A stretch of DNA of 64,000 nt. It comes from Geosiphon pyriformis uo1. Lineage: Eukaryota; Fungi; Glomeromycota. The notes beneath the pieces were generated by a model. The model saw nothing but the letters and a program-made list of their open reading frames with translations. It was not told where the DNA came from and did no database searches. The stretch's first letter is position 1; each line of letters opens with the position of its first letter. Of this stretch, positions 1,898 through 64,000 are shown in pieces. Both the position numbers and the translations under genes were made by a program. The stretch lies in contig JAAOMT010000602.1 in the NCBI GenBank assembly GCA_016748015.1, forward strand, positions 1,005,696 to 1,069,695, given 5' to 3'.

Positions 1898-3100
1898 ACA
1901 CCTTATAGTATCATATATAGTCTTAACAAAATGTCAAATATTGCCAAAAATTACCAAATTATTAGCCAGTAAGAATTTTTTCCGAATATTTATTGGGAAA
2001 ACAAGTCTTAAAGATGTAGTATAATTAGCAATTTTATTGTTTAATATGCCAGAATGGCCCTTTATTTTTGTCTAACTTACAGAAATTTTTTTACTTTTAA
2101 TTAAATTATTAATACAATATTACTTAATCTAATACTTATTATAAAAATCAAGTATTACTGATTTTAATTCAGCTTAATACATATTTATAGAAGCTTAACT
2201 ATCAAAAAAAATCACAACATTGAAAAGAACTAGAATGCATTTTAAAGCCAACACTATAGTCTGTAATTCAGCCAAAATTGACAAAAGCAATTCATAAATT
2301 TCTATCTCTACATTTAGACCCAAATTAAAAAAGTAAGTAGCAGTGCTATAAACCATGTTAAAAGACCCAAATTTTTTAACAGAATTATCAGTATAAATCA
2401 AAATCTTAGACAATAATGCTTTTTTTAATTAAAAATGAACAACATAAAAGTTACTCATATTAAACACACATGTATTAAGACTAGGACCAGAAGCAGATCA
2501 AAGATTACAAGCCAGGCCACTATCTTTAATAAACTTCAAAATTTGCACAAACTATGAAAAGACTGGATTTGTAAAATCTAACTATTTTTAATAATAAAAA
2601 TTTTTTCAAAAGAAGTACACTCCATGATTATTTAAAAATTGGTTTACAAAAACTATGCTGAAATGCTTAAAAAATTTATAGACCTGAAAATATTCAACTT
2701 GATCCAAAATATCTATTACAAAGATCTTATTTTTGAAATGAAAAGCATTAAACAAATTATTGTATAAAAAAATATTATTGTATAGAAAAATTTAAGCAAC
2801 ATCAGCAAAAAAGTTGTTTGCTAAATTGACTTTTAATTTAACCAAAAACTAAAAAAAATTATAAGAAACCTAGCTCAATATTTGCAAATTCAATAACCTA
2901 TGTTGAAAAAACCAACCAAAAATACCATAAACATTGGCAAAGTTTATTATTAATACTATTTTTTCTTTTATTTGTACTTGGTCAAAAGACTTCAAATTAT
3001 ACAGAAATAGATAATATATGATTTTATTAGAAAAGTTATTTGGCAAATTGGTCTTAGTTTTTAGGTTTTTTCTGATTAAACAATCTTATTTATTACATGT

Positions 3101-3985
3101 TGTTACAGGTGATTATTTGGAATCTCAAAGCAAATAACAAATCTGTAACTTGGTGCTTAATTGATATAATGTTGTTGGTAATATCTGAAGATGTTTATGG
3201 ATCTGAAGGTTTTGTTATCTGAAGGTTTTGGTTGAGTTCTTTGTATAATGAACAGAGATTTAATAATTGTTTTAGTAGTCTTCTGGAATTGCAATTCTGT
3301 CAAATTTTTTTTTCAGCATGATGGCCAGTAATCTTCCTGGTAAGCTATCTTAAAATCTATGAGTGTTCTACCTTTGTTTCATGGGTTTTTTACCAATCCT
3401 TATGACATCTGTAATTTTAGTACTTAATCTTTTACTTAATTAGTAAATAACAACAAAAAAAAGAAATAAAAATAAAAGAAATAAGAAATAAGAAATAAGA
3501 AATAAGCCAAGGCAATTCAAGTTAGTATTCTATCAATAGCTGTAATCAAGAGCTATTGTTCCAGTGTAGTTAAATATTGGATTTTATCAACATGAAGTGT
3601 TGATAAATAGAAAAGTGATTATATTTTCAAACAAATGACAATAACATAGATTTGAAGAATTGGAGAGATCTTTTATTTATATAATTCTATTTTAGTTGAT
3701 AGCAACTATCTTTGAAATGAGAGTTAATAAAAAAGAAAGAGGATTGTTCTAAATTAATAAAACTTTATTGAATTCTCCAGGAATTGCTTTTTCTGTTTTT
3801 AATACTTTCACTATATATATATAATTTATGTTATATGAGATTCCTTGAATTCCTCAATTCTCTAGCCAAAAATCCTGGAATCCTGCAATTTCTCATATGA
3901 AAATCCTGGAATTCCACATTTACTACATCTCCTTCTGATTGGCTAATTTATATGTTAATATACTTCCTATATTCTATGAGTAACA
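3101..3985 (-). repeat. 3' LTR of mini-element (family A)
   Basis: TGTTAC...GTAACA termini; matches 6930-7915 and 37956-38875. Confidence 0.92.
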
Positions 3986-4263
3986 TTATTCTCTCCTTTA
4001 ATATTGAGCTTCTGCAAAATCTTCTAAATCTCTTTTTTGTATCAATGTTGTTGCTGTAATTTCTATTGCTATTTGTAAATCTAATTTTATACATGACTGG
4101 AGTTTTTAACTATAATAGTCTGTTCAAAATATCTACATTCAAATCTTGCATCTGTATTATGTACATATTCAGACATAATGCTCTCATTATTATCACTGAA
4201 TTTAGTTAATTCTTGCTCCATTGTAAGATCTAGAAGCATGATATATTGTTCAGTGTTTGAAGT

Positions 4264-4460
4264 GGAGTTTGAATTGTTGTTGGCAGAGTTTAAATTGTTG
4301 TTGTTATTTAGTGAAGTTTGAATTGTTGTTGTCATTAGCAGAGTTTGAATTATTGTTGTCATCAGCAGAGTTTGAATTATTGTTGTCATTAGTGGAGTTT
4401 GAATCATTGCTGTCATTAGTAGAATTTGAATTATTGCTGTTATTAGCAGAGTTTGAATTG
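4264..4460 (-). repeat. 27-bp tandem repeat (~7 copies) encoding NSNSANDNN-like peptide in the pre-dUTPase linker
   Basis: Unit GAGTTTGAATTRTTGTTGTCATTAGCA; ORF 4304-4528. Confidence 0.85.
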
Positions 4461-4674
4461 GAATTAAGTTCCAATTTTGATTCCCATTTGTTTTTGCTGA
4501 TTGGCTCTTTTTTGAATATATGATACATAGGAGTAGATTGTGATTACATCCTAATATTTTGACTCAGGGCTGTTAGGTGAGTTTTGATAATTTATTGGTA
4601 CTGTGGAAATTAGGTTTTATTGGGCTATCAGAGGTAAGTTTTTTTGTATGATAGTGGTGTTTGGAATTTATTAG

Positions 4675-5658
4675 TGTTATCAGACAAAATTAGAAATATT
4701 GTTTAGCATGAAATTACCCTTATAAATTTTATTATTAATTAGCATATATTATTGTTTCAAATTATCACTTATTATATTAGCAAAATGTCCAAAATTATCA
4801 TTTAATTAATAACCCAATTTGTACATAACACAAATGTAACCTAAGTGTGATAATCAATCATGCAATATCCCGAAATATGTAACATTCAAAAGTTTGCCAA
4901 AATTTGTAGAAATTTGCCAAAATAATTGATAGTTCACCGAAATATTTAATAGTTCACAGAAATAACTTGTAGTTTACCAAAATATATCTTTAGTTCAGTG
5001 AAATTGTAGAAAAGAGCAAAGTTCAAGTTCATGGAATAGTGTTACAACAAGTTGTATAAAAGAAGAGCTTCTCTCTTCAAGAAAATATATCTTACTTTAG
5101 ATTTATTACTTAAAACCATTTCTACACACACAAAAAGAAATAAATATCAAATAATTCAAAAAACCAAATTCTTTAATTATTGCACTTGGAAAATCTCCAA
5201 AACCCAACTAACGTTTTGAAATTGATTAGCTACCAATTTCAGTAAAACTGTTAGTGACTTCAGGCCTGGATAGAAAATGTTTCCCTTAACAGAATTCTAT
5301 TTCTTTTATATTTCTTTTATTTTTTTTCTTTTATTTTTTTATTATAATCATTAGGATAGCCTACAGACAAGATTCCTGTAGAAGAGTTGACTTTTACAGC
5401 AAAGTGACTACACATTTTTAGTGAGCTTCCAGATGAGCAATTCCTGGAAAAGAGTTGACATTTACTACAATGTAACTACACAAAGCAACTGGCATGAAAT
5501 TGGCCATTCCACTTATAAGCCCAGCAGTTCAAATTATAGGAGATAATTTGAAGATAAAATTCAGTTATCGGAGGTTTAAACACTTTCCATAGTCATGAAT
5601 TAACAGCATTACAACAAACATACAAGAGTTAAGAAGAGACCAAAAATCTCCGGTAACA
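4675..5658 (+). repeat. Solo family-B LTR
   Basis: TGTTATCAGAC...CCGGTAACA; reverse complement of 58735-59696; flanks TTAG/TCGG; no adjacent PBS or PPT. Confidence 0.92.
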
Positions 5659-5769
5659 TCGGACTTTAAATGTTTGGGTTTTTTAATAATTTCTGGAGTT
5701 TGAATTGCTAGAAATTTAACAAGTTTTATCGACAATAAGTTTCTTTATATGATAGCAGGATTAGAATTA

Positions 5770-6800
5770 TCAGGTTTTAAATGTTTGAGTTTTTGAATGA
5801 TCAGGTCTTGAATAATCGGAGTTTTAACAAATTTTAACAAGTTTATCAAATGTAAATTTTGAATGTTCGGGGTTTTAATAATTGGGTTTTGAATAAATAG
5901 AGTTTTAATTTAACAAGTTTTAACAAATTTATCAATGGTAATTTTCGAATGTTTGGGGTTTTAATGATTAGATCTTGAATAATCAGAGTTTTAATTTAAT
6001 GAGTTTTTAATGAATTTATCAAAGATAATTTTCGAATGTTTGAGGTTTTAATGATCAGGTCTTGAATAATCAGAGTTTTAATTTAATGAGTTTTTAATGA
6101 ATTTATCAATAGTAAGTTTTGAATATTTAGGGTTTTAACAATTGGGTTTTGAATAATTGGAGTTTTAATTTAATGAGTTTTAACAAATTTATCAATGGTA
6201 ATTTTTGAATATTCAAGGTTTTAATAATTGGGTCTTGAATAATTGGAGTTTTAATTTAACAAGTTTTTTTAACAAATTTATTAATGGTAAGTTTCGAATG
6301 TTTGGAATTTTAACAATCAAGTCTTGAATAATCAGAGTTTTAATTTAACAAGTTTTTAACAACTTTATCAAAGGTAAGTTTTGAATGTTCAGATTTTTAA
6401 TGATCGGGTTTTGAATAATTGAAGTTTTAATTTAATGAGTTTCAATGAGTTTATTAATGGTAATTTTCGAATGTTCAGAGTTTTAATAATTGGGTCTTGA
6501 ATAATCAGAGTTTTAATTTAACAAGTTTTTAATGAATTTATCAATGGTAAGTTTTGAATGTTTGGAGTTTTAATGATTGGGTCTTGAATAATTGGAGTTT
6601 TAATTTAACAAATTTTTTAATGAATTTATCAACAGTAATTTTTGAATATTCAGGATTTTAATGATCGGGTCTTGAATAATTGGAGTTTTAATTTAATAAG
6701 TTTTTTAATGAATTTATCAACAGTAATTTTCAAATGTTCAGGGTTTTAACAATCAGGTCTTGAATAAGCGAAGTTTTAATTTTGACAAGTTTTTCAAAGG
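5770..6800. repeat. ~87-bp tandem array, ~12 units
   Basis: Anchor (C/T)TTGAATAA recurs at 5807, 5888, 5974, 6061, 6148, 6234, 6323, 6410, 6496, 6583, 6671, 6759. Confidence 0.93.
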
Positions 6801-6929
6801 TAATGATAAAATAAGGATTTTGTGAATCCTAAGTGATTTTCTCTTGGTTTCTCTTGGTCTGTCACTTTCTTGTATGGTTGTTGTTGGTACTAGTTCTCTG
6901 TTGGATTATATCTCACAAAGAGCACCAAA

Positions 6930-7915
6930 TATTACAGATGATTATTTGGGGTCTTAAAGCAAATAATAAATCCATAACTTGGTGTTTAATTAATATAATG
7001 TTGTTGGTAATATCTGAAGATGTTTATGGATCTGAAAGTTTTGTCATCTGAAGGTTTTGGTTGAGTTTTTTGTATAATAGACAGAGATTTAATAGTTGTT
7101 TCAGTAGTCTCCCAGAATCATAATTCCATTGAATTTCTTTCTCAGCATGGTGACTGGTAATCTTTTTAGTAAGCTATCCTTAAATCTATGAGTGTTCTAC
7201 CCTTGTTTTACGGGTTTTTTACCAGTCCCTATAATATCTGTAACTTTAGTGCTTAATTTTTTACTCAATTAGTAAATAACAACAAAAAAAAAGAAATAAA
7301 AATAAAAGAAATAAGAAATAAGAAATAAGAAATAAGCCAAGGCAATTTAAGTTAGTATTCTGTCAATAGTCATGATCAAGAGCTATTGTTTCAATGTAGT
7401 TAAGTGTTAAATTTTATCAACATGAAGTGTTGATAAATGAAAAAGTGATTATATTTTCAAACAAATGACAATAACATAGATTTGAAGAATTAGAGAAATC
7501 TTTTATTTATATAATTCTATTTCAGTTAATAGCAACTATCTTTGAAATAAGAGTTAATAAATAGAGAAGAAAAAAAATTGTTCTAAATTAATAAAACTTT
7601 ATTGAATTCTCCAGGAATTGCTTTTTCTGTTTTTAATATTCTTGCTATATATATATAATTTATGTTATACAAGATTTTTTGAATTTCTTAATTTTTTAGC
7701 CAGAAATCTTGGAATTCCTGGAATTTTGCAATTTCTTTAAGAGAAATTCTGGAATTCTGGAATTCTGGAATCTTGCAATTCCTCATATGAAAATCCTAAA
7801 ATTTCTGAAATCTTATAATTCTTCTGAGAGAAATCCTGGAATTTCACATTTATTATGTCTTCTTTTAATTGGCTAATTTATATGTTAATATATTTTTTAT
7901 ATTCTATGAATAACA
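6930..7915 (-). repeat. 5' LTR of mini-element (family A)
   Basis: Homologous to 3101-3985 with a longer GGAATTC-type repeat block; adjacent PBS reads TGGTGCTCTTTGTGAG on the minus strand. Confidence 0.92.
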
Positions 7916-10900
7916 ATGTACTCCTATTAATAAAGCTAAACTGAGTTCTATATTCAACAATCAATTATAAAACTACAGAAACCAAATATAAAAATTGCTT
8001 GTCTGAAATAGTCTTATATAAGACTATTAATACAAAAAACTTTACATCCAAATTTGTCTTTTTCATAGAAACTCTTGATTAACAAAAAAATGTCCAAATA
8101 TCAGTAAACTTTACCAGTTTTTGCAATTAAAATAGAAAAGCCACTTATATTTAAAAAAACATTACTAAATCTTGGGTTTATTAGAATTATTACTGTCTTT
8201 TTCATGTTTATTGAAATATTTATAATGTTAAAAATTCACTAGCAATATCTAAAATGTCTGAGTTACTGTACAACAATTGCCAACTCAAATTATATCATTC
8301 ACAAAGGCACCAACAGTTAGATAAAATGTTAAATCTGTATTAGTTTTAATTCTGCCAATTCTGAAAATAAATCTAAAATCTACATAATACCCAAAAACCA
8401 AATTATGCTTTCTTACTTTACACAAAAGAGAGTTATAAAAAATTCTTCAAAGAAGAGATGAAAAAATCTTACTTAATCCAAATTATTATATATCATGTAA
8501 TCATTAAACAGACTGAAGTCTGTTATTATTTTATTATTATGGTTATTGTAAATATAACTAAAGAACTTAATAAATTTATTATATATCTTAATTCTTTGTA
8601 AACTTTTTTTCAAATGTGACCATCCTACCAAATCATATGCTTTCCTTATATTTTGAAATACCAACCACACTTTTCTGTCTTTTTCCAAAACATTCTTTAT
8701 TATAAACTTAACAACAAAGATAAAAGATTAAGTCAAAATGCCTTTCAATACCAAGAAATTGTCTTCTCATAGAACACTATATATATTACAAACCCTAGAT
8801 ATCTAATTAGACAAAATTTTTGACAGAATTTTTATTATAGTCTCAACAAGAGCAATTGATTTAGTATTTGTTAAAACATTTTTTTATTTATAAGGCTTTG
8901 GAATTATTAACACCCAAATATTTTTTTAGACATTAAAAACAGATTTAACTATTAAACACAAATTAAGTAAATGTAAAAAAAAATCCAAAACACATTTGTC
9001 ATACTATTTTTATATTTTATTAGAAATACCAAACAGTTTAGCAGTCTTGCCATTAGGAAGACTATTAACTACCAACAAAAACTTATCAAGATCAATGTGC
9101 TCTATGATATCAGAAAATATTCTATCTTTAACATATTTAAGAGCTGTAAACTGCTTGTATCAACAAACAGGAACAATATCTTTAACTGTATATTTTTTTG
9201 TTCAATTTTTCATGATTAAATCAACTCTATACTTAACCAAATTAGATTTCAAAATCAGATTACTTTTGTTTATTAAATAATCTAATATAATTTTTCTAAA
9301 AAGCTTTTTCAACACACTTCTTATTATTTGATATTTGTTGCTGATAAAAACTTCTATGCATTTGGTAATAGCAGTTCTAATTTGAAAATCCTCAGCCACT
9401 TTAGATTCTGCTAATTTATGAGACCTATAAAATTTTTTAGAATAAGTCAATAATTGTTCAATCAAAATTCTGTTGTAACTATCATTGAAAATGTTCTTAA
9501 ATTTTATAGTCTGAATAAAATCCAATTCAATCTATTTGGTAATCAAAGCTTGAACTTTTATCATGTTATCTAGCCTATACACTTTCAAAATATTAGATAT
9601 TAGCAATTTCAATTTGTAAAACCTAGAGAATACAGCATATTTGAGTACATTAAAATCTTGGAACCATGTTTTTGAAAGAACAGCTTTGGTAACAAAACTT
9701 ATTATCTAACTGAAAAATTTTTACATTTTATTAACATCTAGATTTTTTTTACAGTCATTAAAGTTATTAACAGCAGTTAGAGCAGCAACTATTAACAAAT
9801 TTCCAAACTTTTTTCAGATCTTACTATTAACACCACTGATTTTGAACTTTTATTTATTCTTAATAGCCTGCTTACATATTGAAATAAGATAAAAATTGAG
9901 GAGTTTTTTTAAATTGATGTTTGTTAATACAATTATGTAATTGGTATCAAAAAACTCATTTAAACAATAAATTTGTTAATTATAAGAAAAACTCTTAAGA
10001 TTATCACTAACTAAAATAAAGTCTATACACTTCTTAACCTCTTTGGAATTGGATTATGTAGACAATTTACATACCAAAAAACCACTGAAAGAATTACACA
10101 ATTTCATATCTATAAACTTCTTGAAACTTGTATTGTGACCAGACTCATTTTTGTTAAAGTTTTTTCTGAGAATCATAAAAATACTACTATTCAGTATTTT
10201 AATCACCATTGAATTGATTTTACATGACTGAGTTAACTTTTTATCTAAAGTAGTTCCAGCATATAAATTTAGAATAGAAACTAAAAAACAACTTTTAAAT
10301 AGCAAACATATTAACAAAAGCCAACCAGTCATCTTCAAGACTTTGCACATGTATTTTACAATATTACTGTTAATTATTACAGCAACATTAATCTTTAGAT
10401 AATTAGAGTCAACACCTAAAGTAAAAACTTTAATTCTATTAAACTTGCTCATTATTTAAGAACAAATCTTGTCTCTTAGCTTTGTTTCTGTAACAATAGA
10501 TATAAAATTTTTTTGATTCTTATGCCAATAAATAATGTCTTTTTGCTTTGCTAAATTTTTTATATCTTTAATATTGCATATAGCAATTTTCCAAATTGAA
10601 TCACTCATTAAGTTAAAGAGAAGACCAAAAAATCCAAGCCAGCATATAACTAATTTAACTTCTCCAGAACCAAACTAACAGAAATCTCAAAAGCTACTAT
10701 TTTAGATTTCAATCCACTTATTTTGGTAGTTAAAATCTTGAAACTACTTAAACCCAAATCTGAAATCATGATATTAACAACTAAAAAAGGGGAAATAAGT
10801 AACATAAGTGAGTTATCCAAAACCATATTCAAATTCAACTTTAAAATTGAAAGATTAAACACAATAGAAAGAGAGAAATGAAAAAAAAATGCCAGAAACA

Positions 10901-12479
10901 CCAGATTTGTATTGCTCAACTTTCATGCAATATTTAAAACTTAATCAGCCAAAAGCTCTAAAAAATGTTTTAAAAAATTCAGGCAAGCATCAATCAATAA
11001 AAATTTTGGAAGAGCAGACACATTTTTTTTACTAAGTAAAGTATTAAAAAAAGAAAAACTAGAGCCAGAATCAAAGTGATTATTTTCAGAAAAAGCAGCA
11101 AGTAAAACCACTTGTGCTTAAGATTTACCACTAAAGGCAGCAGAATAAGAAATAGTAACACTTTTTTTGACATATAATTTGGCAAACTAAAGACAATTCA
11201 CATCTAAAACAACTTTTTTAAAACTTTTTAAAAAAGAAAAAGCAAAAACACCAAATATATTATACTCTAAAGCAAAATGCCCAAAATGCTCATATTTTTT
11301 ATACTGAACTAGATTTATTTTTGTCCAAAAAAGTTTAACATTATCAAAAATAGACTCTATGTAAAAAGCTGTTCCAATGTTTTATTTAACTTAAAACCAA
11401 TAATGACACAACAAATTTTATTGTCTGTCTCTAATGATTAATTAATGATGCAAGTTTTTTTATTAGCCTCTTCTAAAAGAGTACTCAAATTATAAACTGT
11501 TGTTTTTACAAACAAAATAAACAAAAGTGGCTTAAAACAATTCTTAAACATTTAAGTTTTTCAATTTTTTACAGTTATAACCACACACACCAAATTTTTT
11601 CCAATTAAGAATAATTATCTTGATGTCAACTGCTTAGTCTAACTTAATTCAGCAAATTCTATTACAGTTTTTTGCTACAGCCCAATTAATTGTACTTTAA
11701 TTAACTTAATTTGGCCAAATTTGAATACTACAGTAATGATCATATTTTTAGACATATTTATAAGAATTTTATTGATAATCACAGTCTGATCTGAATATAT
11801 TTTCTGTTTTTTGACATTATTGTTTATGATAATATCTTTTTTTTTGGCCAATAATGTGGTCTTTTTCATACTATTTTTTAAAGTGAAAATAGATTTGATA
11901 ATTTTTTTAAATTTTAAAGGAATAATAATCTCTTCAAAACCATTAACAGTTAAGAAAATTTTTTTGATTAACTGCATCTTTGCTGTTGCTAATTTGCTCT
12001 TTATTGCCAAAAGATTAATATCCAAAGTAAAAAATTTCTTGACTGTTACATCAATTTGAATTTTTACAATTTTAGAATTAACTCATATTTTGTTAAAAGA
12101 GATATTGAAAGAAAGAAAGAAAAACCCAACTTTTTCATCTATTTTAAAATTAAGAAAACCAAAAAAAAGTCACAATTCAAACCAGTAATCACCCTTTTTG
12201 TTTTAGAAATAATAACAGCTGAATTTAGAAAAGACTCACCATTAATATCAGTTATACTACTGTTTTTGTTATCATCAGACATACTGTCTACATTAGAATA
12301 CATACTATTATCAGACCCAAACTTGATTAAAAAAATATCTTTCTTATTATCAGAATGTTTAATATTCTCAAGAACAACTTTCTTTTTTTGTAAAAAAAAA
12401 ACCTTTAGCAGGACCATAAAAAGCATTTTTGGACATCTTTTTTTTAAATATGCTGCTATCTGAAGCAGCTCCCAAATTT

Positions 12480-46099: not shown

Positions 46100-46101
46100 T
46101 T

Positions 46102-46118
46102 TGGTGCTCCCTGTGAGA
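46102..46118 (+). promoter_or_regulatory. Primer-binding site of element A
   Basis: TGGTGCTCCCTGTGAG lies 2 nt after the LTR; TGG pairs with the tRNA CCA end. The tRNA identity was not determined. Confidence 0.85.
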
Positions 46119-46161
46119 TATAATCCTACAGAAAACCAGCACCAACAACACCAAACCAAAA

Positions 46162-49865: not shown

Positions 49866-50109
49866 TTACAATCTACCATCACACATGATCTACACAATCC
49901 CGGAAGAGGAAGAACCAATCAGCAGCTGTGCATCAAAATCAGAATCACCAATCAATCGCGATTCAAACTCCGACAATGATGATGACAACAATAGTTCAAG
50001 CTCCGTTCAAAATGGCAATGACAACGACAATAATTCCGACTCAGATACAAACTCCGATTTAAACTATGAACAATACATTGTACTACCAGATCTCTCCAAG
50101 GAACAAAAA

Positions 50110-50525: not shown

Positions 50526-50929
50526 GAATAAAAGTACCAGTTAATATGGTGGAGGAAGAAATTGTTGGCCAAGGAGAAATTATCTCAACTGGTCAAGCTA
50601 TTTTCATTCCACCATATAGCCAGTACATGTTAGCAATAGAAAGGAAGGAAAAAGAGCAAGAACAGATTTTTGAAGTGGAAGCAATCTTTTGTGAATCAGA
50701 AGAGATTGGGTTGATTAATCTCCACATACCAGCCAAAAGCTATAGCAGCATAAAAATTCCCATCTACAACAACACTGGTAATGTCATCAACATACCAGAA
50801 GGAACCACCATCGGATATCTAACCACAAAAATAGAAAACCAACCACCAAACTCCATTCCAGACTTTTCACAACTTTGTGGATATGTTGACATCACATTAC
50901 AGACAATTTATGGATGAGACAAATGTTAT

Positions 50930-52346
50930 TTGCTCCAACCAGAACAATTGGAACAAATGAACATAGAAAACTTAGATCTACTTCAATGTATGCAGCTCAA
51001 GATGTTACTCAACAATTTCAATGACATCTTTGCCAGCAAAAATGAGTTTGGCCGAACTGATATCATCCAGCATCAGATCAAGACTGGAGATGCAATGTCA
51101 ATCAAACAAAAAGCATACAGAGTGCCGCCAGCCAGCCATAAGATTATTCGTCAAGAGATAAATAGAATACTTGACAACAGGTTAATTCAACTATCAATGA
51201 GCCCATGGTCATCACCAGTGGTACTTGTCCATAAGAAAAATGGAAAAATCCAGTTTTGTGTAGACTACAGGAAACTCAATGGTATAACTCGTGGAGACAG
51301 TTATCCAACTTTATGAATACAAGAATTATTTGATGCTTTCGGTGGGAACAAATGGTTCTCCACATTAGATTTGGACAGTGGTTACTGACAAGTAGCCATG
51401 AATCCAGCTGACAAAGAGAAGACAGCATTTACTACTAGAGAAGAAAATTTCAAATTTGAAGTAATACCATTCGGCTTAACCAATGTCCCAGCAACTTTTC
51501 AACAGCTAATGGAAATGTTTATACTGGCTTATTGTGAAAATCAGTAGTTGTATATTTGGATGACACCAATGTATTCTCAAAGACGTTTGATAATCATCTT
51601 CATCATCTTCAACAAGTGTTCCAAAGACTGAGAAGAGCAGGACTGAAGTTAAATGCGACAAAATACTTCTTTGGCAAGACGGAACTCAAATTCTTGGGAC
51701 ACATAGTCAGCAAAGACAGCATCAAAACAGATCCAGAGAAAATAGAGATAGTAAAGAACTTTCCAGTGCCAACCAATATAACAGAACTGAAATCATTTTT
51801 GGGATTTGCCAGCTACTATCGTCGTTTTATCAAGAACTTTTCCAAGATAGCGCAGCCACTCAATCAACTGCAAAACAAAAATGCAAAATATAAATGGACA
51901 GAAAGTCAACAAGAAGCTTTTAATATTCTGAGGAAAAAGCTCATCCAAGCTCCAGTACTGATCTATTCAGATTACAGCAAACCATTCATCATCACCACCG
52001 ATACATCTGGCCAAGCATTGGGAGCAGTATTATCTCAGAGAGGACTGGATGGCAGAGAACATTCAGTAGCATATGTTTAACACCAGCTAAAAAGAACTAT
52101 GGAACACTGAAACAAGAACACTTAGCAATATACTGGGCCATCATGAAATGAAAAGAATACTTGAGCCAGAAGTTTGAAGTATACACAGATCACAAGAGAT
52201 TAACATCACTCCAAAAACAAAAATTTGGAGATGGAAGACAAGCAAGATGGAAAATAGCACTCGCACCATACAATTATACTATACATTACAAAAAGAGAAA
52301 AGACAATAGAAATGCTAATGGTTTATCGCAAATAAGACAAATCTAA
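50930..52346 (+). pseudogene. Reverse transcriptase and RNase H of element A
   Basis: SPWSSPVVLV, FCVDYRKLN, PFGL, YLDD, FLGH, FLGFASYYRRFI, TDTS, YTDH, ANGLS. Confidence 0.95.
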
Positions 52347-52409
52347 GAACATTTCAACCCAAAAATATAATAAAACCAGAACAATACCAACGGAAAAATA
52401 CAACAAAAG

Positions 52410-53792
52410 ATGAATATACAAAAATATCAACAATTACAACATTATCTAAACACTCAACAATTCAAGGAGAATTTATCTCATCCGGAACGAAGGAGTATCA
52501 AACACCAATCAAAATATTTCATCACTCACCAAAATATACTTTTTTGGAAAAATAGAAGGGATCCAAATCAACCAACCAGAGTAATTATGGAGCCAGAAAA
52601 AGAGACAATATTATTCAACATGCACTTAAATCCAACAGCAGGACATTTTTACAAAGAAACAACCATGGAAAGGATTAGAAAAAGATACTATTGGCCATCA
52701 ATGTACCCAGACATCATTCAATATGTTCAAAATTGTGACACTTGTCAGCGAAGAAGAGGAACAAAACCCAGTGAACCATTAAGACCAATCAAAGTGGGAC
52801 AACTATTTGACCGTATGAGAATTGATTTAGTAAGACCATTAACAATCACCAGCAGAGGAAACAGATACATAACAGTAGCTATGGACTATCTCATTAAATG
52901 GCCAGAGGTGAAAACAATTCAAAGAGTGGATGCAGAATCCGTTGCCGAATTTGTTCATCAGAATTTGATTTGTTGACATGGATGTCCAAAAAAATTATTA
53001 TCAGACCAAGAAACTCATTTTGTGAACAGAACATTAACAAAATTGAGCCAAAGATTCGGAATCAAGAGACTATTATTATCATCATACCATCCACAAACCA
53101 ATGGATTAGTAGAAAGATTCAACAGAACATTGTGTGAAGCAATAGCCAAGCTCAGCCAAGAAAACCAGAATGATTGAGATTTGTTTATACCATCAATACT
53201 ATTTGCTTATCGGACAACAAAACAAGATACTACACAAACAACACCATTTGAATTAGTATATGGAAGAATAGCAACATTATCAGTAGAGAGAAAAATTAAT
53301 ACATATCCAGCTGAACCAATAACAGAGAAAAATTTTCAAGAAACATTGCTGAAAAGAACATATGACTTAATGGAAACATTGGAAAACAAACAAAGAAGAG
53401 CAGCTGATAATATCCAAAAATCCCAAAAAACACAGAAAGAAAAACATGATAGTCAACTATTAGACAAACCAGTTGAATTCAAGATCGGAGACAAAGTATT
53501 ACTACATCATACCAAAGCAGAAAAACAATGGAGTGGAAAATTTGACCCCAAATGAGACGGACCATTTCACATAGAAGAAAGTCTAGGAAATGGAGCTTAC
53601 AAATTAAGATTGGATAACAAAATTTTAACCAAAGCAACACATGGAGATTGACTGAAACCATATCACAACATTATACTACCATCTACCAATAATATTCCAC
53701 AATTAGGAGTACAGAGAATACTAGTCCAACCAGATAAGATTCTACAAGATTGGGAACCAATCATTATTATCGACAACAACACATTAAATTGA
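52410..53792 (+). pseudogene. Integrase of element A (HHCC, DDE and GPF modules; no chromodomain)
   Basis: HLNPTAGH, YYWP, CDTCQR, IDLV, SDQ, YHPQTNGLVERFN, GPFHI. Confidence 0.95.
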
Positions 53793-53816
53793 TCCATTAA
53801 AAGAATATATAAAGAC

Positions 53817-54476
53817 ATGGTAGACACAACAGGAAGTATCAGAAAAATGAAAATTACAGACAATATTCACTCACTAGCACAACAACTCTTTCAATTAATC
53901 CAACACCAGGAAATGGAGATTACAATCAATCAACAAACCATTCGATATTAAGATACTAGAAAGACATTTCAACTCAGAACACAGAAGAAAACTGAAAATA
54001 CTGTGGATAAAATTATGGTAAAAGTAAAATTAGCAATAAAAGAATCGACAAAAGAGTCACTATATCAAGAGTTGACTAAAGAAACTTGGAATTGGTAGAT
54101 ACAACAATTTCCATGAAACTATTGTTATTTTTACTTAAGATAACATGTAAATATCCAGAATCTATATACGGATAAAACAAAGTGATTATTCAACCAAGGA
54201 GTACTACAACAATTAGAATATTTTGTGGAAAAAAACAACTTATCCACACAAGCCTGAGCCATATACCGAATACATACAGCATTTCAAGATAAACCAAAAA
54301 TATTGCTCAACAGAGCAATGGATCTGATTATCAGTAATCAATTGGGAAAAATCACTAATGCTTAATTTGAAGAATTACAGACCCAAATAACACAAGTAAT
54401 TCTCGAAAACAAAATCCAGGAAATACTTTAAGAGGGGGAATCACATGAGTTAGATTTTGACAGAGCTCAATATTAA
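53817..54476 (+). pseudogene. ORF3 of element A (unknown, 219 aa plus stop)
   Basis: A single frame runs from ATG 53817 to TAA 54476. All internal stops can be explained as CAR/CGA>stop. Homologous to B ORF3. Confidence 0.75.
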
Positions 54477-54490
54477 AAAGAAGGGAATAA

Positions 54491-55320
54491 TGTTATTCAT
54501 AGAAATATAAGAAATATATTAGCATAATTATTAGCCAATTAGAAGTAAGCATAGTAAATGTGGAATTCCAGGATTCTTCTCAAAGGAATTGCAGGATTCC
54601 TGTCATGAAGAATCAAGGAATTGAGGAATCCCAATTATGTATATATAGCAGTAGTGGTAGAAACAGAAAAAACAGAATCGATACCACAGAATCCTTAGCC
54701 TAGAAATGCAATCATCAAATAAATAATTATTTTATATCTTCATCCACTTCCCCCACTATCAACCTTTCATGTTGATAGTAATTGATACTTGACCATGCTG
54801 GAACAATAGCTCTTGATCATGGCTATTGACAGAATACTAATCTGCAAATCGCCTTGGCTTATTTTTTTGCTTTCTTTATTTCCTTTTATTTCTTTTTTTC
54901 TTTATTTTATTTTGATTTGTTGTTATATACTAATTGATAAACAATTAAGTGCTGAGTTATTGACATTAAGGATAGCCTGGTAAAAGACCCAGAAATACAG
55001 GTAAGATTTTTATATATTATCAGATAGCTTACTAGAAAGGCACGACTGCCAGACTAAATCCGGCCACCATGCTAAGAAAGAAATTGGAAAAACTCTTGGA
55101 AAATATCTCTACTATTGACACTATTGAATCTCTGTCCATTATACAAAGGACTCAACCAAAACCTTCAGATTAACCAAAACCTTCAGATCAACCAAAACCT
55201 TCAGATCCATCAAAACCTTTAGATACAACACCTTCAGAATAGTCTTAACGGAAGTAGCTTTTAAGCACCAAGTTACGGGTTTGTTATTTAATTCAACAGC
55301 AGAAATAATCACCTGTAACA
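54491..55320 (+). repeat. 3' LTR of element A
   Basis: Matches 45264-46099; preceded by the purine tract AAAAAGAAGGGAA. Confidence 0.95.
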
Positions 55321-58300
55321 CCGTTGTTGTTGAAGTATTTAAGTTGTAAGGCAGGCTGATTTTCGATAAGGTAGATGGGTGTTGTTTCAATTTCTTCCAT
55401 TGCTTTAGGTTCTCCAAATTCAATTTCGTTCTCATTATTTTCGCTGGGCAAGGGGATACTAAGAGCATAACATTTAGGACACTACTGTTCATCACAAGGC
55501 ATAATGCATTCTTCACATAGCTTAATGTTCATTTGTTCTAATTGTTGAGTTTCTTGGGTTGAGTAGGTGTGACTTGCAATTTGGTGGTAGACTTCTACTT
55601 CATCTTTGTAATTGAATCCAGCTAATTCTATAGTGTATTCAATGTATTCTGCTTTTTTCATTTGACAAACATTTTCTTTAGTAGCTCCATTAATTAATGT
55701 TATTGCTAGGTCAAAAATCATCTCGGCATTATGAGAGTAGTGATAAAGTTTGTTGAGAGCACTGTTGTATGCCACATTAAAGGGTGTTCCTCTTTTTACT
55801 TTTTCTGAAATTAATAAAGCATATTGGCAGGTTTGATCACAGACTTCACCTCTCATTGCTATATCAATTCAATTGCATTCTTCCAGTAGCATATCTCCAC
55901 AAGTCAAACAAGAGATGTTGTCTCATTTTCTACTTCTTTTTATTAGATGGCCCTATCATTCTCTGTGGCAAGTCTTACAGTAATAACAAGTATGATTTTC
56001 ATATTCTTCTTCAGGTGAAATGCAGGCTTCCATTGACGATAGTTTCTTGTGACAGTCTTTACATTTAAGGGGAATATAGAAGTGTTGTTTCCTTGGTTCG
56101 GGTTTTGAGTAAGGGATATTCCATTCAGAGGTTTTGAGTTCAGAGTGTGGAGTAAAATGTTCTTGTTCCATTTCATCAGCCCAGTTAGACGTTAATCCAA
56201 GAGCCATGAATGTTTCAATAAAGGATTTTTCCTCTTCCGGTTCAAATTCAAAAGCCGGGGCTTTTTCAGAGTATTTGTTGAATGTACCACAAGTGGCAGG
56301 TACCCAGACATGTTGTCCTTGGTAGGAGATTGTTAACTTTTGTGTTTCCCAATTCAGATTAGCATTGGCTTTTTGAAGCCAATTATTTTTGATAAGAGCT
56401 TGGTACTGGAGTGCGTCCATTACAAGAACTTTGACTAGAATGATGATTCCATCAAAAGTGAATGGAAAATTGTCAATTTCTCCTATTGGGGTCTTTTTCA
56501 TGTCATCAGCAGTGACAATTACTGTTTGAGCTGGTCAGTCGACATTTCTCTTCAACTGTTGCATTAACTGGTAGGTAATAATACTTCTGGTGGATCCACT
56601 GTTTAGGATCAAGCAAATTGTCTTTCCTTCGACTTCTGCTTCAGTGTACATAGCTGTGATTGCTTTTTGTTCATTGGTGGCTGCATTGCTAAGCAGGAAT
56701 GGTGACTCATTTGCTTCAAACTCAAAAGAGAATATATCTGAAAGATTAGCGTTTTCAGCAATTCTGGCTGGTGAGATTGTGGTAGGAGTATAGGAAAGGT
56801 TTTGTTGTTATGCTGCAGCTCTACCTCCCTAGAGTGCAGTATAGTGAAAATCCTGTTCTTCTGGCATTGTTAAATAACTGGGTTGAGTGTGGTAGTAGTT
56901 GGGTCTTGGTTGAATGGAATTTTGGGGAACTAATTGGTTGTTCAAACTGATTCTATTGTTGTTTACTTGGTACCAGTTTTGTGATGTGAATTGATTTTGT
57001 GTAATCAGTCTTCGAGCAGGTACTTGATAATGTTGTGTGAGTGGTTGTTGGTATTGCTGTTGAATTGGCTGTGCGGCAGGTTGATAATAGTTATTTTGGT
57101 ATTGGGGTCTTGGTGGATAGTAAACTGGTAGTGGTGGTTGATAATAAGATTGCTTTGGTGAAGGGTAACATTGATTACTCCTATTTTGTTGGTCTTGTTG
57201 TAGCTTTCTGCAATCTCTTTTCCAGTGGCCAGAAATTTCACAATAATAGCAATTCTGAGACTGGTTATTGGAAAGTGGTGCAAAGTTATTTTGATTTCGT
57301 CTTTGGGGTGGTTGATATCTTTAGGGTTGCTGTTGTTGTTGATTGGTGAAATAGTTTTCAACCTTCTTTGTGAGTTGGTCAATTTTTTCCTCAGCTGCTG
57401 AGCTGGTTTCTCTAATTGCCAAATTTACAAGTTTTGTGGGATTGGCCTCTTCTATGGCCATTTCATATCTTTTCGCATGCTGTATGGCAGAGTTTAAATC
57501 TTTTGGCACATGTGGGCGAACCTTTTTAATTAGTTTATCTTTTAGACCAGCAATAAATTGATCCAAAATTTGAGCATTGGAATAATAATCATTTGTTTCG
57601 AGTTGGTGAATTTGTCTGAGAAGTTTGTTGAATTTCCTGATATAAGTCATAACAGATTCAGAAAGTTCTTGTTTAATATTTTGAAAACAATTGCAAAGGG
57701 TGATGGAGGTATTATTGTCAGTGAACTGTTTAAGGAAGGCTGCTTTGAAAGCATTCCAATCATTGAATGGGGTGGCCAAGTTTTTAAACCATTCTCCTGC
57801 TGTTCCTTTGAGAAAGTAGGGAATTGTTCTTAACATTCTGGCAGCATTTTATCCATTTGCATTTCCAGCTTTAGTAACTTGGTCGAGCCATTCTTGGGAA
57901 CTGGTCTCAATGTCTTCTCCATTAAATTCAGAGATTTTTGCGATGTATGTTGTCATTTTGTCTTTTTTGTTTTCACTGTCTATTGATTCTTCTTCAGATA
58001 TTTCAGGTTTGTTTTCTTTGTTTGCTGCTGTCTGAGAGTGTTCACTTTGATTTTCAGCTAAAAAGTCAAGGAGATTGGAACTAGTTTGAAGGGGTTCTTG
58101 TTGTCTGATGGGACTTCTGAGTGATGTAAAATCTTCTGGTCTTGCAAATCAATTCAAGGGTGAATTAGGCGTTTGTGCTTGTGCAAGTGAAGCTAGAAAA
58201 AGTGTGATAGTAAGTGGAAGTTTTGAACTGGTTCCTTGTTCAGGTGTTTGTAAATGTTTGGCAGTTGTTTTTGGTAGTGTTGGAGTATTTGGAGTGGTTT

Positions 58301-58688
58301 TTGAGTCTTGTTTTAATTTGTTTTTGCCTTTGTTGCTTGTTTCTGTTTCTGATTCAAAATCAATAGAGTATTGAAACTGCACTGGATATGTTTTTTCACA
58401 GTATTTAATAATGTTAAAATTAAGTTCGTGAAAGTAAGTGGCAAGTGTTTTGCTATTAAGGTCTTCAGTTCTCAACTGTGAATAGTGTGCTAAATTATTG
58501 TAAAGATTGCTTCTAACTTCTGAGATATTGTAATTTCCAAAAAGATAATTGTTGATGCAGTTTTCAATGTATTGGTATACTGATTTCTTGACAACTTCAA
58601 TTCCATCTGAAATGTTGAATCTTTGCTTGCAGTGGGTGTAAATTGATTGGTAATACTCTAGAGTTGTTGCATCTGGTGTGATTGCCAC
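55321..58688 (-). pseudogene. gag: Gag extension, gag (ATG 57956), protease and Cys-rich domain of element B
   Basis: MTTYIAKISEFNG..EWLD, AGEWF, QFIAGL, CYYCEISGHWKRDC; protease LILNSGS; CKDC, CKTC, CLTC, CDQTC, CEECIMPC. Confidence 0.9.
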
Positions 58689-58714
58689 TTTGAATTTTGT
58701 TGTTGCTGTGTTAT

Positions 58715-58732
58715 TTCTGTGGGAGAGCACCA
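58715..58732 (-). promoter_or_regulatory. Primer-binding site of element B
   Basis: TGGTGCTCTCCCACAG lies 2 nt from the LTR end. Confidence 0.85.
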
Positions 58733-58734
58733 AA

Positions 58735-59696
58735 TGTTACTGGAGATTTTTGGTCTCTTTTCTTGAATGTTGTTAATGTCTGTTTGTTGTGAATTCACGT
58801 TTCCAGGAAGTAGTTGGACCTCCAGTAACTGAATTTATCTTCAAATTATCTCCTATAATTTGAACTTACTGGGCTTATGAGTGAAATGGCCAATTCCATG
58901 CCAGTTGCTTTATGTAGTTACGTTGTAGTAAACATCAACTCTTTCCCAGGAATTACTCGTCTGGAAGCTCACTAAAAATGTGTAGTTACTTTGCTGTAAA
59001 AGTCAACTCTTCTACAGGAATCTTGTCTGTAGATTACCTTAATAATTGTAATAAGAAAAGAAAAGAAAAAAATAAAAGAAATGTAAAAGAAATAGGATTT
59101 TATCAAAGGAAACGTTTTTCTATCCAGGCCTGGAGTCACTAACAATTTACTGAAATTGGTAGCTAATCAATTTCAAAATGTTAGTTGGGTTTTGAGGATT
59201 TTCAAGTACAATAATTAAAGAATTTGGTTTTTCGAATTATTTAATATTTATTTCTTTTTGTGTGTGTAGAAATGGTTCTAAGTAATAAATCTAAAGTAAG
59301 ATACATTTTCTCAAAGAGAGATGCTCTTTTTTTATACAATTTGTCGTAACACTATTCTATGAACTTGAACTTTGCTATTTTCTACAATTTCACTGAACTA
59401 AAGATACATTTCGGCGAACTATAAGTTATTTCGGTGAACTATCAATTATTTCGGCAAATTTCTACAAATTTCGGCAAACTTTTAAATGTTATATAGTTCA
59501 GGGTATTACATGATTGATTATTACAATTAGGTTACATTTGTGTTGTGTACAAATTGGGTTATTAATTTAAATGATAATTTTGGACATTTTGCTAATGTAA
59601 TAAGTGATAATTTGAAATAATAATATATGCTAATTAATGATAGGATTTATAAGATAATTTCATGCTAAATAATATCTCTAATTTTGTCTGGTAACA
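58735..59696 (-). repeat. 5' LTR of element B
   Basis: Matches 39792-40774 but lacks one ~22-bp internal repeat unit. Confidence 0.95.
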
Positions 59697-62487
59697 CCAC
59701 AAGTGAGACATGATTTGTTGTCCCACTTTCCTTGACATTTTGGGTACTTGTATCATTCTCTATGGCATGGCTTACAATAATAATGTGTATATGTTCAGTA
59801 GTCTTTGTCTGGCACTACCCAAGCTCCCATAGAAGAAAGTTTCTTTTCACAGTCTTTGTATTTAAGAGGTATGTATAGTGGTTGTGGCAGTGGCTTGTGA
59901 ACTGAGTATGAATTTGTCTAGCCACTGTTTATTTTTTTAGTGTCTATGGCTTTTTTGGATATGTTTTTTTCTTTTCTCTCTTTTCCCTTTCCCTTGTTAT
60001 CCTCTTTTTACTCCCAAGTTGACTGTTTGTCCTAGTTATTGTCAGTTCCCTATGTTTGATCAGTATTCCAGATATGTTCTTTTTGTTGTTTTTTTTTCCT
60101 GTTATTGTCCCAAAAAAGTATAGGTGGCAGTTCATTGTGGTCATTGTCAGCTCATGAGACTTAATATGCTTCCTAAGTTGGTTTTTTTTCTTCTTCCTCA
60201 AAGTCAATAAGTAGTACTGGTGGGTTGTTGGTTTTGAAGTGACCACACATAACTGGTATTCATGTGTATTGGCTATTTTGGCTAAGTTGAAGCTTCTGTG
60301 TTATCCAGTTGAGTATGGTATTGGTTTTAGATAACCAGTTGTTTTCTACTAATGCTTAATATTGAGTTGCTTTTATCACTAGGACTTTGATAGGAGTGAT
60401 GATGCCATTGACTTCAAAAGGAAAGTCATCAATTTCACCAATAGGAGTTTTGGTTGCTCCATCAGCAATGATAATTTGTGCACTGGCAGCTCGATCAACT
60501 CAATGATCTAATTGGTCCATAAGTTGTCTTGTAATGATGCTGTCAGCTGATCCACTATTTAGGATTAGTTTGATAAAGTGGCCATCGACTTTGACATCAA
60601 TGTACATGGCAGTGATAAATTTTTCTTCTAGGGCGGCTCTACTAAACAACAGCATGGTTGACAGTTCCTTGAGTTCAAATGAAAAAATGACATCCAGTGA
60701 TTTGTTTTTGGTAATGGTAGCTGGTAGAATGTTGCTGATAAGTGTTGGTTATTGGTTAAATGCCAGGTTATTGAGTTGGGTGTTTTCTGGAGTAACCAGG
60801 AAACTTAAATAGTATTGGAAATTTGGGTTTTGTGTGTACTTGGTTCCCGAATTCCAAAACCATGATCTTGATTGTTGTGTAGAGAAGCTGGGAATCAGTT
60901 GGTAAACAACCATTGCCAATCTCCAATTTTGAGTAACTTTTAATCTAGAGTTTTCTAATGTCACCTGAGCTGGGTTTGATGACAGTGGTTAAACTATGGG
61001 TGTTTGATAAATTGTTTGTGATTGCAGTAGTTGATAGATTACTTGTGGCTGCAGTTGATAAATTGGAGGTTGATATATGGGTGGTTGATATAGTGGCTGT
61101 TACATTATTGGTAGGTAAGTGAGTTGATATTGGTCTTGATTTAAGTAATAATTCAGAATTTGAATTCTATGATCAGGGTTTCAGTATTGATTTCCCAATT
61201 GTGAATTACTATAAAAATGGCAGTTAGCTCTAATGTGACCTTGTTTACCATAGTTGTGGCAGACTCGCATATCTGACTGCCATGACTGATTGGATAATAA
61301 TAATAGATGTAACTGATTTTGGAAATAATTCAGGTTTCCTAAATTATTGTATCATTGTAGTGGTTAATAAATTGCACAATTGTCAACTAAGTATCCCTCA
61401 ATTTTTTGATTGATCAAATCACTGAATTGCTTTAGTTTGGAATCCAAGTTAGATGATCTATTCATTACTAGATTTATGGCTTGGGCGTGGTTAGCTTCTA
61501 ATTCAGCTGATTCAAAATCTCTGGCATATGTAACTGTGGCTTGAAAATCTGCTGGATGCATTGGGCATACATGTTGAAGAATGCTACTGCATAATCTGTG
61601 AATAAACTGATTCAGGATCTGGGCTGTGATAAAGTAATTGGCGTCAATAGCTTGTATTTGGCACAAGTTTCAATAGAAACATCCCAAGTAAGTGGTAACT
61701 GCTTCAGTATCTCCTTGTTTGATGGTGGTAAAAGTATTGGCCAAGTGATTAATGCTGTTGCTGTTACTAAAATATCTTAAAAATTCTAATTTAAATGCAT
61801 TAAATGTTTGGGGTTTTTGAGCTAAACTATAATACCATGAGTCAGTGGCATTTTGAAGAAAATAGGAGATTGCTTAGAAGGCTCTGGTATCATTCCAGTT
61901 ATTGGTGGTGATAGCTTTGACAACGTCATTGATCCACATTTGGGTGTCGTCCTCTTTGCCAGAAATTTTTCTAGCTTTGTGATTGGTGCGCATGCCATTT
62001 GTTGTTTTTATTGTGGTTGTTGAAGTGGCTGTTGAAGTTGTTAAAGTAGTTGCAGTAGTTGTTAAATAAGTTGCTGAAATGGCTGTTGTTGAATTAGTTC
62101 AATAATTGGTTTAATTGGTGGCTGATTGATGATGATTACTGGAGATAAGTTTTTCTGATTAATTGTTTTGGAGTTGGTATTGTTTTGAGTTTGCTGGATT
62201 TAAATATTTGGAGTTTCAACTTTTGGATTTTCCAGGATCGAGTTTTGGTAAGTAAATTCCTAATTCTTACTTTCTTTTTCTTCCTTTTTTTCTGATTCTG
62301 TTATTTTCCATAAACTCGCAGTTCTAAAATCTGGTTGATGTGGCAATGATTGAAATCCTAATGGCATTGGTGATCACAATTTAAATCCTTTAAAGTATTT
62401 ACTGTATGGCCCTAATAGTTCTGCTCTTCTTTGTTTACTTTGAAATAGAAATTGTTTAAAGGTTAAGATTGTGTTTAATGCGGATGT

Positions 62488-63470
62488 TGTTACTAGACAA
62501 AATTAGAGATATTATTTAGCATAAAATTATCTTTATAATTCCTATCATTAATTAGTATATATTATTGTTTTAAATTATCACTTATTACATTAGCAAAATG
62601 TCCAAAATTATCATTTAATTAATAACCCAATTTGTACATAACACAGATGTAACCTAATTGTGATGATCAATCATGCAATACCCCGAAATATGTAACATTT
62701 AAAAGTTCGCCAAAATTTGTAGAAATTCGCCGAAATAAGTGATAGTTCACCAAAATATTTAATAATTTGCAGAAATAACTTGTAGTTCACTGAAATGTAT
62801 CTTTAGTTCAGCGAAATTGTAAAAAAGAGCAAAGTTCAAGTTCATAGAATAGTATTATAACAAGTTATATAAAAGAAGAGCTTCTCTCTTTGAGAAAATG
62901 TATCTTACTTTAGATTTATCACTTAGAACCATTCCTACACACACAAAAAGAAATAAAATATCAAATAATTCGAAAAACCAATTTCTTTAAATATTGCACT
63001 TGGAAAATCTCCAAAAACTCAACTAACATTTTGAAATTGATTAGCTACCAATTTCAGTAAACTGTTAGTAACTCTAGGCCTGGATAGAAAACGTTTCTCT
63101 TGACAGAATTCTATTTCTTTTATATTTCTTTTATTTTTTTTTATTTTCTTATTATAATCATTAGGATAGCCTACAGACAAGATTCCTGTAGAAGAGTTGA
63201 CTTTCACAGCAAAGTAACTACACATTTTTTTTAGTGAGCTTCCAAACAAGTAATTCCTGGGAAAGAATTGATGTTTACTACAACATAACTACACAAAGCA
63301 ATTGGTACGGAATTGGTCATTCCACTTATAAGCCCAGCAATTCAAATTATAGGAGATAATTTGAAGATAAATTCAGTTACTGAAGGTTCAACTACTTCCT
63401 GGAAACGTGAATTCACAGCAAATCAACATCAACAACATTCAAGAAAAGAGACCAAAAACCTCTAGTAACA
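62488..63470 (+). repeat. Solo family-B LTR inserted in the gag extension of E
   Basis: TGTTACTAGAC...CTAGTAACA; TSD ATGT/ACGT. Confidence 0.94.
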
Positions 63471-64000
63471 ACGTGTCTACTGCAAAGATATTGATAACAT
63501 TTCCTGGTGTATAATAGTATGATGAATTGATAGGTGATTCAACTCTGGTTTTCTTCCAAGTGGGTGGTTGTATCTTTTTGGATGTTATTACTGGTGTTTG
63601 CAATCTTCCTTTCTTTTTGTCTGCATAGGCGATGGGAAATTGTTATTGGATGTACCTTTTAATGGTTTGATTGATTTCCCTGATAATTGGTGCAAAACTG
63701 TAGTTTCTTAATAAACTGGTATGTTAAAATAACTTTGTATAAAGATTTTCTCTTGTGGATTCAATGTTAACTGTTCCTCCTAAGGAGTCTGTAATTTTAT
63801 TGTTGACATAAAAGTTGAAGACTGATTCTGCTGGAAAATGGTTATTGTTTAATCTTAGCTGTTGGCTGTACTGTTGAAACAGGGATTTGGCAAATCCTAG
63901 ATGGTTGGTTTCTATAATTTCTGGTTCTGCCACTTTTAGATAATTGTTGTTGGTGCTGGATCTCTGTAGGATTATACCTCACAGGAAGCACCAAATGTTA

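Follow-up and report, generated by a model that had tools for sequence, protein, structure and literature searches.

Pyrimidine–purine target centers and a CpG bias in the insertions of two nested Ty3/Gypsy retrotransposon families of Geosiphon pyriformis

We analyzed the long terminal repeat (LTR) retrotransposons of a 64-kb window (the whole stretch of DNA under study) in the Geosiphon pyriformis assembly GCA_016748015.1, where copies of two element families, A and B, lie nested within one another, and found that their 4-bp target-site duplications (TSDs) are always centered on a pyrimidine–purine (Y-R) step, with CpG favored among such steps. The window is AT-rich (GC 29.6%) and, as an earlier reading of this DNA from its letters alone (hereafter, the sequence-only reading) had remarked, poor in CpG, with 267 CG dinucleotides (observed/expected 0.19); TG and CA are in excess (observed/expected 1.21 and 1.28). 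Proteins of the window match G. pyriformis annotations only, among them G9A89_010377, which is the window's own gene (100% identical).

The family A element A1 (3101–7915, minus strand) is non-autonomous and is bounded by LTRs at 3101–3985 and 6930–7915 that are 88.9% identical; its TSD reads ATGT on both sides (3097–3100 and 7916–7919), with the complement of the primer-binding site (PBS) at 6920–6929 and the polypurine tract (PPT) side at 3986. Nested in A1 is a solo LTR of family B (4675–5658, plus strand), flanked by TTAG (4671–4674) and TCGG (5659–5662). The family B element B2 (39792–59696, minus strand; LTRs 39792–40774 and 58735–59696, 92.9% identical) lies between two copies of CCAC (39788–39791 and 59697–59700) and is interrupted between gag and dUTPase by the family A element A3 (45264–55320, plus strand; LTRs 45264–46099 and 54491–55320, 91.4% identical), which contains gag, dUTPase, reverse transcriptase–RNase H (RT-RH) and integrase (IN) fragments and has the TSD CCAT (45260–45263) and CCGT (55321–55324). 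B2 and a second solo B LTR (62488–63470, plus strand; ATGT at 62484–62487, ACGT at 63471–63474) are themselves inserted in an A-like element, A2, whose 3′ LTR spans 37956–38875 on the minus strand (outer flank ATGG at 37952–37955, CCAT in element sense) and whose interior extends rightward past both insertions up to the window end. The sequence-only reading had described this nesting and the five two-sided TSDs; every tetramer proved exact, with the PBS and PPT junctions confirming the LTR ends.

Families A and B are Ty3/Gypsy (Metaviridae) LTR retrotransposons with the domain order gag, aspartic protease (PR), dUTPase, RT, RNase H and integrase (H2C2, rve, SH3_Tf2-1), along which Pfam matches follow one another as Retrotrans_gag/Ty3_capsid, Asp_protease, RVT_1, RT_RNaseH_2, Integrase_H2C2, rve and SH3_Tf2-1. 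Their LTRs, ~980 bp long in family B and ~830–990 bp in family A by self-comparison and profile searches, share the termini TGTTAC...GTAACA (TG...CA type). A PBS common to both families, TTTGGTGCTC, directly follows the 5′ LTR and a purine-rich PPT precedes the 3′ LTR, so that the LTR boundaries are fixed independently of the TSDs. Sequence identity between A and B, ~35% over dUTPase-PR and 48% over the N-terminal half of IN, indicates that they are distinct lineages. Among solved structures, the family A integrase is nearest to that of prototype foamy virus (PFV; E = 2 × 10−10), then to that of Ty3. The dUTPase lies between protease and RT in both families (44227–45273, minus strand, and 49795–50442, plus strand, in the window), and in B2 its open reading frame (ORF) at 44227–45273 also holds a segment matching the Pfam spumavirus A9 protease family. 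Known as an uncommon accessory domain in fungal Gypsy elements (PMC2864245), dUTPase is notable where repeats decay mainly by C-to-T change.

The sequence-only reading had proposed that both families insert at CpG, with the TSD consensus N-CG-N. Because that pattern was first noticed post hoc in five pairs, 12 further loci were fetched from the same genome (~246 kb, bringing the total to 310 kb). Annotated fragments of the dUTPase ORFs of both families led to them, the B2 dUTPase ORF, which is 87–88% identical to annotated G. pyriformis proteins, serving as a query. LTR ends were located by profile hidden Markov models (HMMs) that were built from element copies and served detection only. The further loci yielded 11 two-sided TSDs and 12 one-sided flanks; together with the window, 32 insertions were scored, half of them two-sided and half one-sided, with 23 from outside the window, and the two-sided pairs comprised six of family A and ten of family B. 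The added pairs of family B were TCGG/TCAG (locus L002), CCAT/CCAT (L003), ACAC/ACAC (L004), CCGG/CTGG (L005), GTGC/GTGC (L006), TCGT/TCAT (L011) and ATGA/ATGA (L012); those of family A were ACAT/ACAT (L007), ATGC/ATGC (L009), ATGC/ACAC (L010) and, at a solo LTR, CCAA/CCAA (L011).

TSD length was 4 bp in 16/16 pairs, and the center was Y-R in all 32 events against a background of 0.225 (P ~ 2 × 10−21; lower 95% bound 0.91). The same center was found in both families and was replicated in 23/23 events outside the window (P ~ 1 × 10−15). All four bases occur at TSD positions 1 and 4, and the constraint falls on positions 2 and 3 only. Where TSD partners disagree, they do so at the center, as the sequence-only reading had seen in its five pairs: in the enlarged set of 16 pairs all nine mismatches are central transitions, compared with 0/32 differences at outer positions (Fisher P = 0.002). 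With 32/32 Y-R centers and 32/32 outer matches, both the 4-bp TSD and an N-Y-R-N rule are solid.

Besides A2, three incomplete LTRs of the window present an outer flank: an older family A LTR reduced to its 3′ part (33332–34014, minus strand; ATGG at 33328–33331), a fragment of an older family B LTR with the 5′ terminus preserved (1147–1897, minus strand; ACAC at 1898–1901, GTGT in element sense) and an old, decayed family B LTR with the terminus GTAATA (23638–24538, plus strand; TTAA at 24539–24542). These four one-sided flanks, which the sequence-only reading had listed, adjoin LTR ends found by the profile HMMs, whereas a fifth that it had tentatively added, at 20334, had no A/B LTR match (nhmmer, E ≤ 1 × 10−3). 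The 3′ flanks of family A in element sense are repeatedly CCAT or CCGT (window 33328, 37952 and 55321; L007 3716), and the target motif may extend past the central two bases, as M-C-R-T. Position −3 is also W-rich (41/48). The one-sided flank in L008 is less secure than the others; it stands beside an inverted duplication of A interior sequence (1–5296 versus 7161–12455, 93% identical) that abuts the outer edge of the A LTR at 6254–7160 and is either a rearrangement or an assembly artifact.

The elements have decayed mainly by transition. Paired LTRs differ by 675 transitions versus 37 transversions, and the probability of CpG loss that they imply is ~0.52 per copy. Counted per site-copy against the family majority state, the C-to-T rate was 0.37 at CpG, 0.125 at CpA, 0.107 at CpT and 0.144 at CpC, and the T-to-C rate was 0.018; C-to-T change is ~3 times higher at CpG than at other cytosines and ~7 times the T-to-C rate. 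Repeat-induced point mutation of the Neurospora type was ruled out as the source of the transitions because there is no CpA bias. The substitution pattern suggests pervasive deamination of the cytosines in G. pyriformis repeats. CpG decay accounts for TSD partners that differ at the center only, and for the one copy that passed from CG all the way to TA (TTAG opposite TCGG). Derived from the CpG loss of paired LTRs, the content at birth would have been ~19 CpG per 930 bp (~2% of dinucleotides); the youngest pairs have ~12 per LTR, or roughly 1.2% of dinucleotides, and the oldest ~0–1.

At least seven of the 16 two-sided targets were definite CG targets: CG survives on one side of six pairs, and a seventh pair is discordant, TG against CA (L010), the mark of a former CG whose two copies decayed on opposite strands. 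Seven is too low a count, since decay of both copies to the same dinucleotide leaves no trace. The reconstruction of pre-insertion sites that the sequence-only reading had suggested was run with paralogs, and all seven rebuilt empty sites align continuously with paralogous host copies. At the exact site, where there are several paralogs, they carry a mixture of CG, TG and CA for A3, L002, L005, L010 and the family B insertion of L011; those of the A3 site read CCGT, CCAT or CTGT, which implies an ancestral CpG site. The rebuilt empty site of the solo B LTR at 4675–5658 aligns across the junction with paralogs carrying TCAG. For the second solo B LTR (62488–63470), A3 alone is an uninformative host comparison because it is itself CpG-decayed; in the multi-paralog comparison used instead, one paralog has CG. 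As a side observation, the insertion site at 4671/5659 sits in sequence akin to an 86–89-bp unit of A1, ~12 copies of which form the tandem array that makes up much of the A1 interior at 5774–6800.

We compared these targets with a local background, the dinucleotides within 150 bp on each side of the 16 two-sided sites, both as they stand today and after a maximal CpG restoration in which every TG, CA or TA with CG in any paralog was counted as CG; the restored background is over-generous because it assumes no decay before insertion. Local frequencies were 0.44% (present-day) and 2.45% (restored) for CG, 14.0% and 12.3% for TG and CA together, and 8.0% and 7.7% for TA. Under a binomial null in which only Y-R matters, seven CG targets of 16 have P = 1 × 10−8 on the present-day background and 8.5 × 10−4 on the restored one, and the replication set (4/11 CG) has P = 4 × 10−5 and 0.025, respectively. 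Under a null in which CG, TG and CA are equivalent, the 16 pairs still give P = 2 × 10−7 (present-day) and 0.0099 (restored). A likelihood model fed with each element's own CpG decay rate put the share of CG targets at 0.55 (maximum likelihood; 95% interval 0.27–0.84), which implies a per-site preference for CG over TG or CA of ~6-fold on the restored background to 38-fold on the present-day one. Measured against its surroundings, then, CpG is genuinely favored at the TSD center, with an uncertain effect size; an enrichment test of the kind that the sequence-only reading had called for genome-wide, run here on the window and the 12 further loci, returned an excess of CG, and none of the 32 events was non-Y-R.

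CpG is favored and not required, so that of the earlier proposal the over-representation of CG stands and the N-CG-N consensus gives way to N-Y-R-N. A strict N-CG-N rule predicts an even split of double-decayed pairs between concordant and discordant, and the split observed was 9:1 (P = 0.011), the nine concordant pairs being TG/TG or CA/CA; setting the CG share (π) to 1 costs 5.6 log units of likelihood; and several targets have simple CA or TG, CG being absent from all their paralogs. Paralogs of the B2 site comprise 11 with CA and 2 with TA, those of the L004 site 17 with CA and 6 with TA, and those of the L006 site 5 with TG. For the concordant pairs of L009, L012 and, weakly, A1, paralogs carry the opposite decay product, which marks these as ex-CpG sites; they may or may not have been CG at the time of insertion.

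Probably, these patterns reflect a preference intrinsic to the integrase for the central step of its target, in the order CG > TG/CA >> TA >> non-Y-R, that was later blurred by CpG decay. Integrase would make a 4-bp staggered cut and tolerate only Y-R at the center of the target dyad, with C:G pairs further favored at the central step, such that both half-sites would be optimal in N-CG-N, one in N-TG-N or N-CA-N, and none in N-TA-N. A multiplicative half-site model fits this hierarchy, with C preferred, a T weight of ~0.03–0.18 (from local frequencies) and purines excluded at TSD position 2. After insertion, C-to-T decay of both TSD copies, ~3 times faster at CpG, would convert CG/CG into CG/TG, CG/CA and TG/CA. 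By analogy with the PFV intasome, we infer that selectivity lies in the integrase–target DNA complex, where a sharp central bend would combine with base contacts. The 1998 protein–DNA deformability scale of Olson et al. reportedly ranks CG > CA > TA, which would match the observed order.

Several points weigh against this interpretation. When CG, TG and CA are taken as equivalent, the replication set (4/11) gives P = 2.4 × 10−4 on the present-day background but only 0.095 on the restored one, and no CG/CG pair was seen where ~2 were expected. The sample is small (16 pairs), and because genes of transposable elements (TEs) were the way into every locus, its targets are TE-rich by construction. 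The present-day and restored backgrounds serve as stand-ins for the CpG content that targets had when insertion took place. A third LTR family, sought in the 310 kb as a within-genome control, provided no scorable LTR pairs. Finally, the preference may reside in a cofactor instead of the integrase itself.

An alternative is that generic flexibility of the target center is all that matters: any Y-R step would serve, and CG would be enriched merely because the targets are young TEs with near-normal CpG. A central Y-R preference is universal in retroviral integration and strongest where TSDs are 4 bp long (PMC4422553), the LTRs would have carried ~2% CpG at birth, and the CG excess of the replication set is modest under maximal restoration by either null. 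Yet TA, which makes up 36% of local Y-R steps, is confined to two one-sided flanks and one TSD copy opposite CG (P = 1.2 × 10−4), and no pair of the 16 is TA-centered (P = 8 × 10−4). This, together with a CG excess among the 16 pairs that persists on the maximally restored background and a Y-R requirement that is essentially absolute, compared with 39–43% in PFV (PMC4422553), leads us to consider flexibility alone an unlikely explanation.

No more likely, in our estimation, is methyl-CpG-directed integration, in which the intasome or a partner would recognize 5-methyl-CpG and so be steered into methylated, silenced TEs, TG and CA being tolerated since T also carries a 5-methyl group. Such a mechanism would agree with CpG as the most favored center and with the finding that every two-sided insertion lies in repeated DNA, since other parts of the 310 kb hold paralogs of each empty site. 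Heavy CG methylation of TEs is documented in a related fungus, Rhizophagus irregularis (bioRxiv 10.1101/2021.03.30.436303), and past methylation of the elements is implied by their strong CpG decay. However, TE-rich sampling makes it uninformative that all targets are TEs, and TA is avoided though it has two 5-methyl pyrimidines. Pol, its tail and the post-pol ORF yielded no match to a methyl-binding or other reader domain (Pfam, E ≤ 1). Likewise, in keeping with the sequence-only reading, no chromodomain was matched (Pfam, E ≤ 1) in the ORF pieces from the IN core to the 3′ LTR of family A (L007, L008, L009 and the window) and family B (L003 and L005), all copies being partly degraded; family B pol stops ~45 residues past the GPF/SH3 module. 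Recognition of a 5-methyl-pyrimidine and a following G at the target center, whether by the integrase alone or by an intasome that includes a host partner, is doubtful; methylated CpG would then be the optimum and TG its look-alike.

That the rule stems from chance, ascertainment or mis-set LTR ends that make element sequence pass for TSD is highly improbable, even though it was noticed post hoc in only five pairs and TG, CA and TA occur commonly in this genome, because the independent loci, whose differing flanks show that they are not duplicates of one another, reproduce it in every event, the termini are fixed by PBS and PPT junctions, the outer TSD positions always match, and the rebuilt empty sites align unbroken to paralogous host copies.

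Weak palindromic preferences are all that is generally ascribed to retroviruses and to LTR elements other than the Drosophila errantiviruses. Retroviruses with 4-bp TSDs, PFV among them, prefer a flexible Y-R center because the target is sharply bent there, with the occupancy given above (Serrao et al. 2015, PMC4422553). Although fungal Ty3/Gypsy elements and not vertebrate retroviruses, families A and B resemble PFV and the gammaretroviruses in their 4-bp staggered cut and in a symmetric, palindromic preference, centered on the TSD dyad, that favors Y-R. They differ in that Y-R occupies every center scored and that its steps, which retroviral analyses group as a class, are ranked CG > TG/CA >> TA. 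The identity of the bases within Y-R matters, TA being under-represented and CG over-represented, and the data depart in this respect from pure, base-independent bendability. By this comparison, the Geosiphon elements appear to follow the central-step rule in an extreme form and to discriminate between bases in addition.

Strong tetranucleotide targets, namely TATA, ATAT and, in the ZAM/Tirant subgroup, CGCG, are known from Drosophila errantiviruses (Nefedova & Kim 2017, PMC5408687), and AT-rich motifs were reported for all Drosophila LTR families (Linheiro & Bergman 2012, PMC3276498). Sequence-specific integration has been described as exclusive to errantiviruses and their derivatives (PMC5408687), a group outside which the Geosiphon case falls. 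Shared features are membership of the Gypsy group, a 4-bp TSD and a strong palindromic target motif, which in errantiviruses is set by integrase lineage and in one of their subgroups contains CG. Errantiviral motifs, however, fix all four bases, whereas A and B constrain the central two only; the centers of TATA and CGCG are R-Y, in contrast to the Y-R of Geosiphon; and errantiviral LTRs end in AGT...AnT rather than TG...CA. The analogy with Tirant drawn in the sequence-only reading is accordingly loose, the type of center and the LTR termini being different (PMC5408687). Among fungal elements, A and B share TG...CA termini and a dUTPase in pol, between PR and RT in some families, with the Ty3/Gypsy elements of Novikova et al. 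2010 (PMC2864245), but those are chromodomain-bearing chromoviruses with no reported target-sequence rule.

The places in which retrotransposons accumulate, and the damage that they cause, depend on target-site choice, and here two diverged fungal Gypsy lineages combine a near-absolute requirement for a central Y-R step with a marked CpG bias in a CpG-depleted genome. Because CpG per LTR falls with age, a CpG-favoring integrase would hit young TEs more often, and its insertions would be tilted toward those still rich in CpG. A link from CpG bias to nesting is plausible from these sequences; if true, the bias would contribute in a simple way, at the level of sequence, both to nesting and to the reported LTR expansion of Geosiphonaceae (PMC11952901). 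Should integration instead be guided by methylation, it would give Gypsy elements that have no chromodomain a route into silenced young TEs, a self-reinforcing 'safe haven' that would build deep nests. The preference also offers a clean, testable substrate rule for integrase biochemistry. In addition, CpG decay often makes the TSDs of A and B look imperfect, so that LTR finders requiring exact TSDs would miss or mis-date these elements.

Family B has a post-pol ORF that begins ~120 nt past the conserved stop of pol, ends ~30 nt inside the 3′ LTR and encodes 239 aa when intact. Copies lie at 40752–41462 (minus strand) in the window, where the ORF of B2 contains 2 stops, and at L003 11673–12392, L004 13983–14702 and L005 8497–9216. 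Dozens of intact 239-aa versions are annotated, all in G. pyriformis, and pN/pS is 0.3–0.5. The ORF has no Pfam match and its AlphaFold model, made from a 22-sequence alignment, was unusable (mean pLDDT 41.6), so that it may or may not be env-like in the manner of errantiviral ORF3; published diagrams of fungal Ty3/Gypsy elements include additional ORFs of unknown function (PMC2864245). Family A has an open piece of ~174 aa at the corresponding position (L007 14090–14611).

A protein search of JGI metagenome contigs found no relatives, and the 120 stretches in such contigs with an exact match to an LTR-end/PBS 16-mer were taken as chance matches, none fitting the A or B LTR profile. Further older family B fragments lie in the window at 25066–25585 and 32409–32756. 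In L003, the B copy at 6168–13349 is only 7.2 kb long and lacks RT-RH-IN, with gag, PR, dUTPase and the post-pol ORF intact and LTRs that are 95.9% identical; it resembles a deletion derivative that, though non-autonomous, was still being mobilized.

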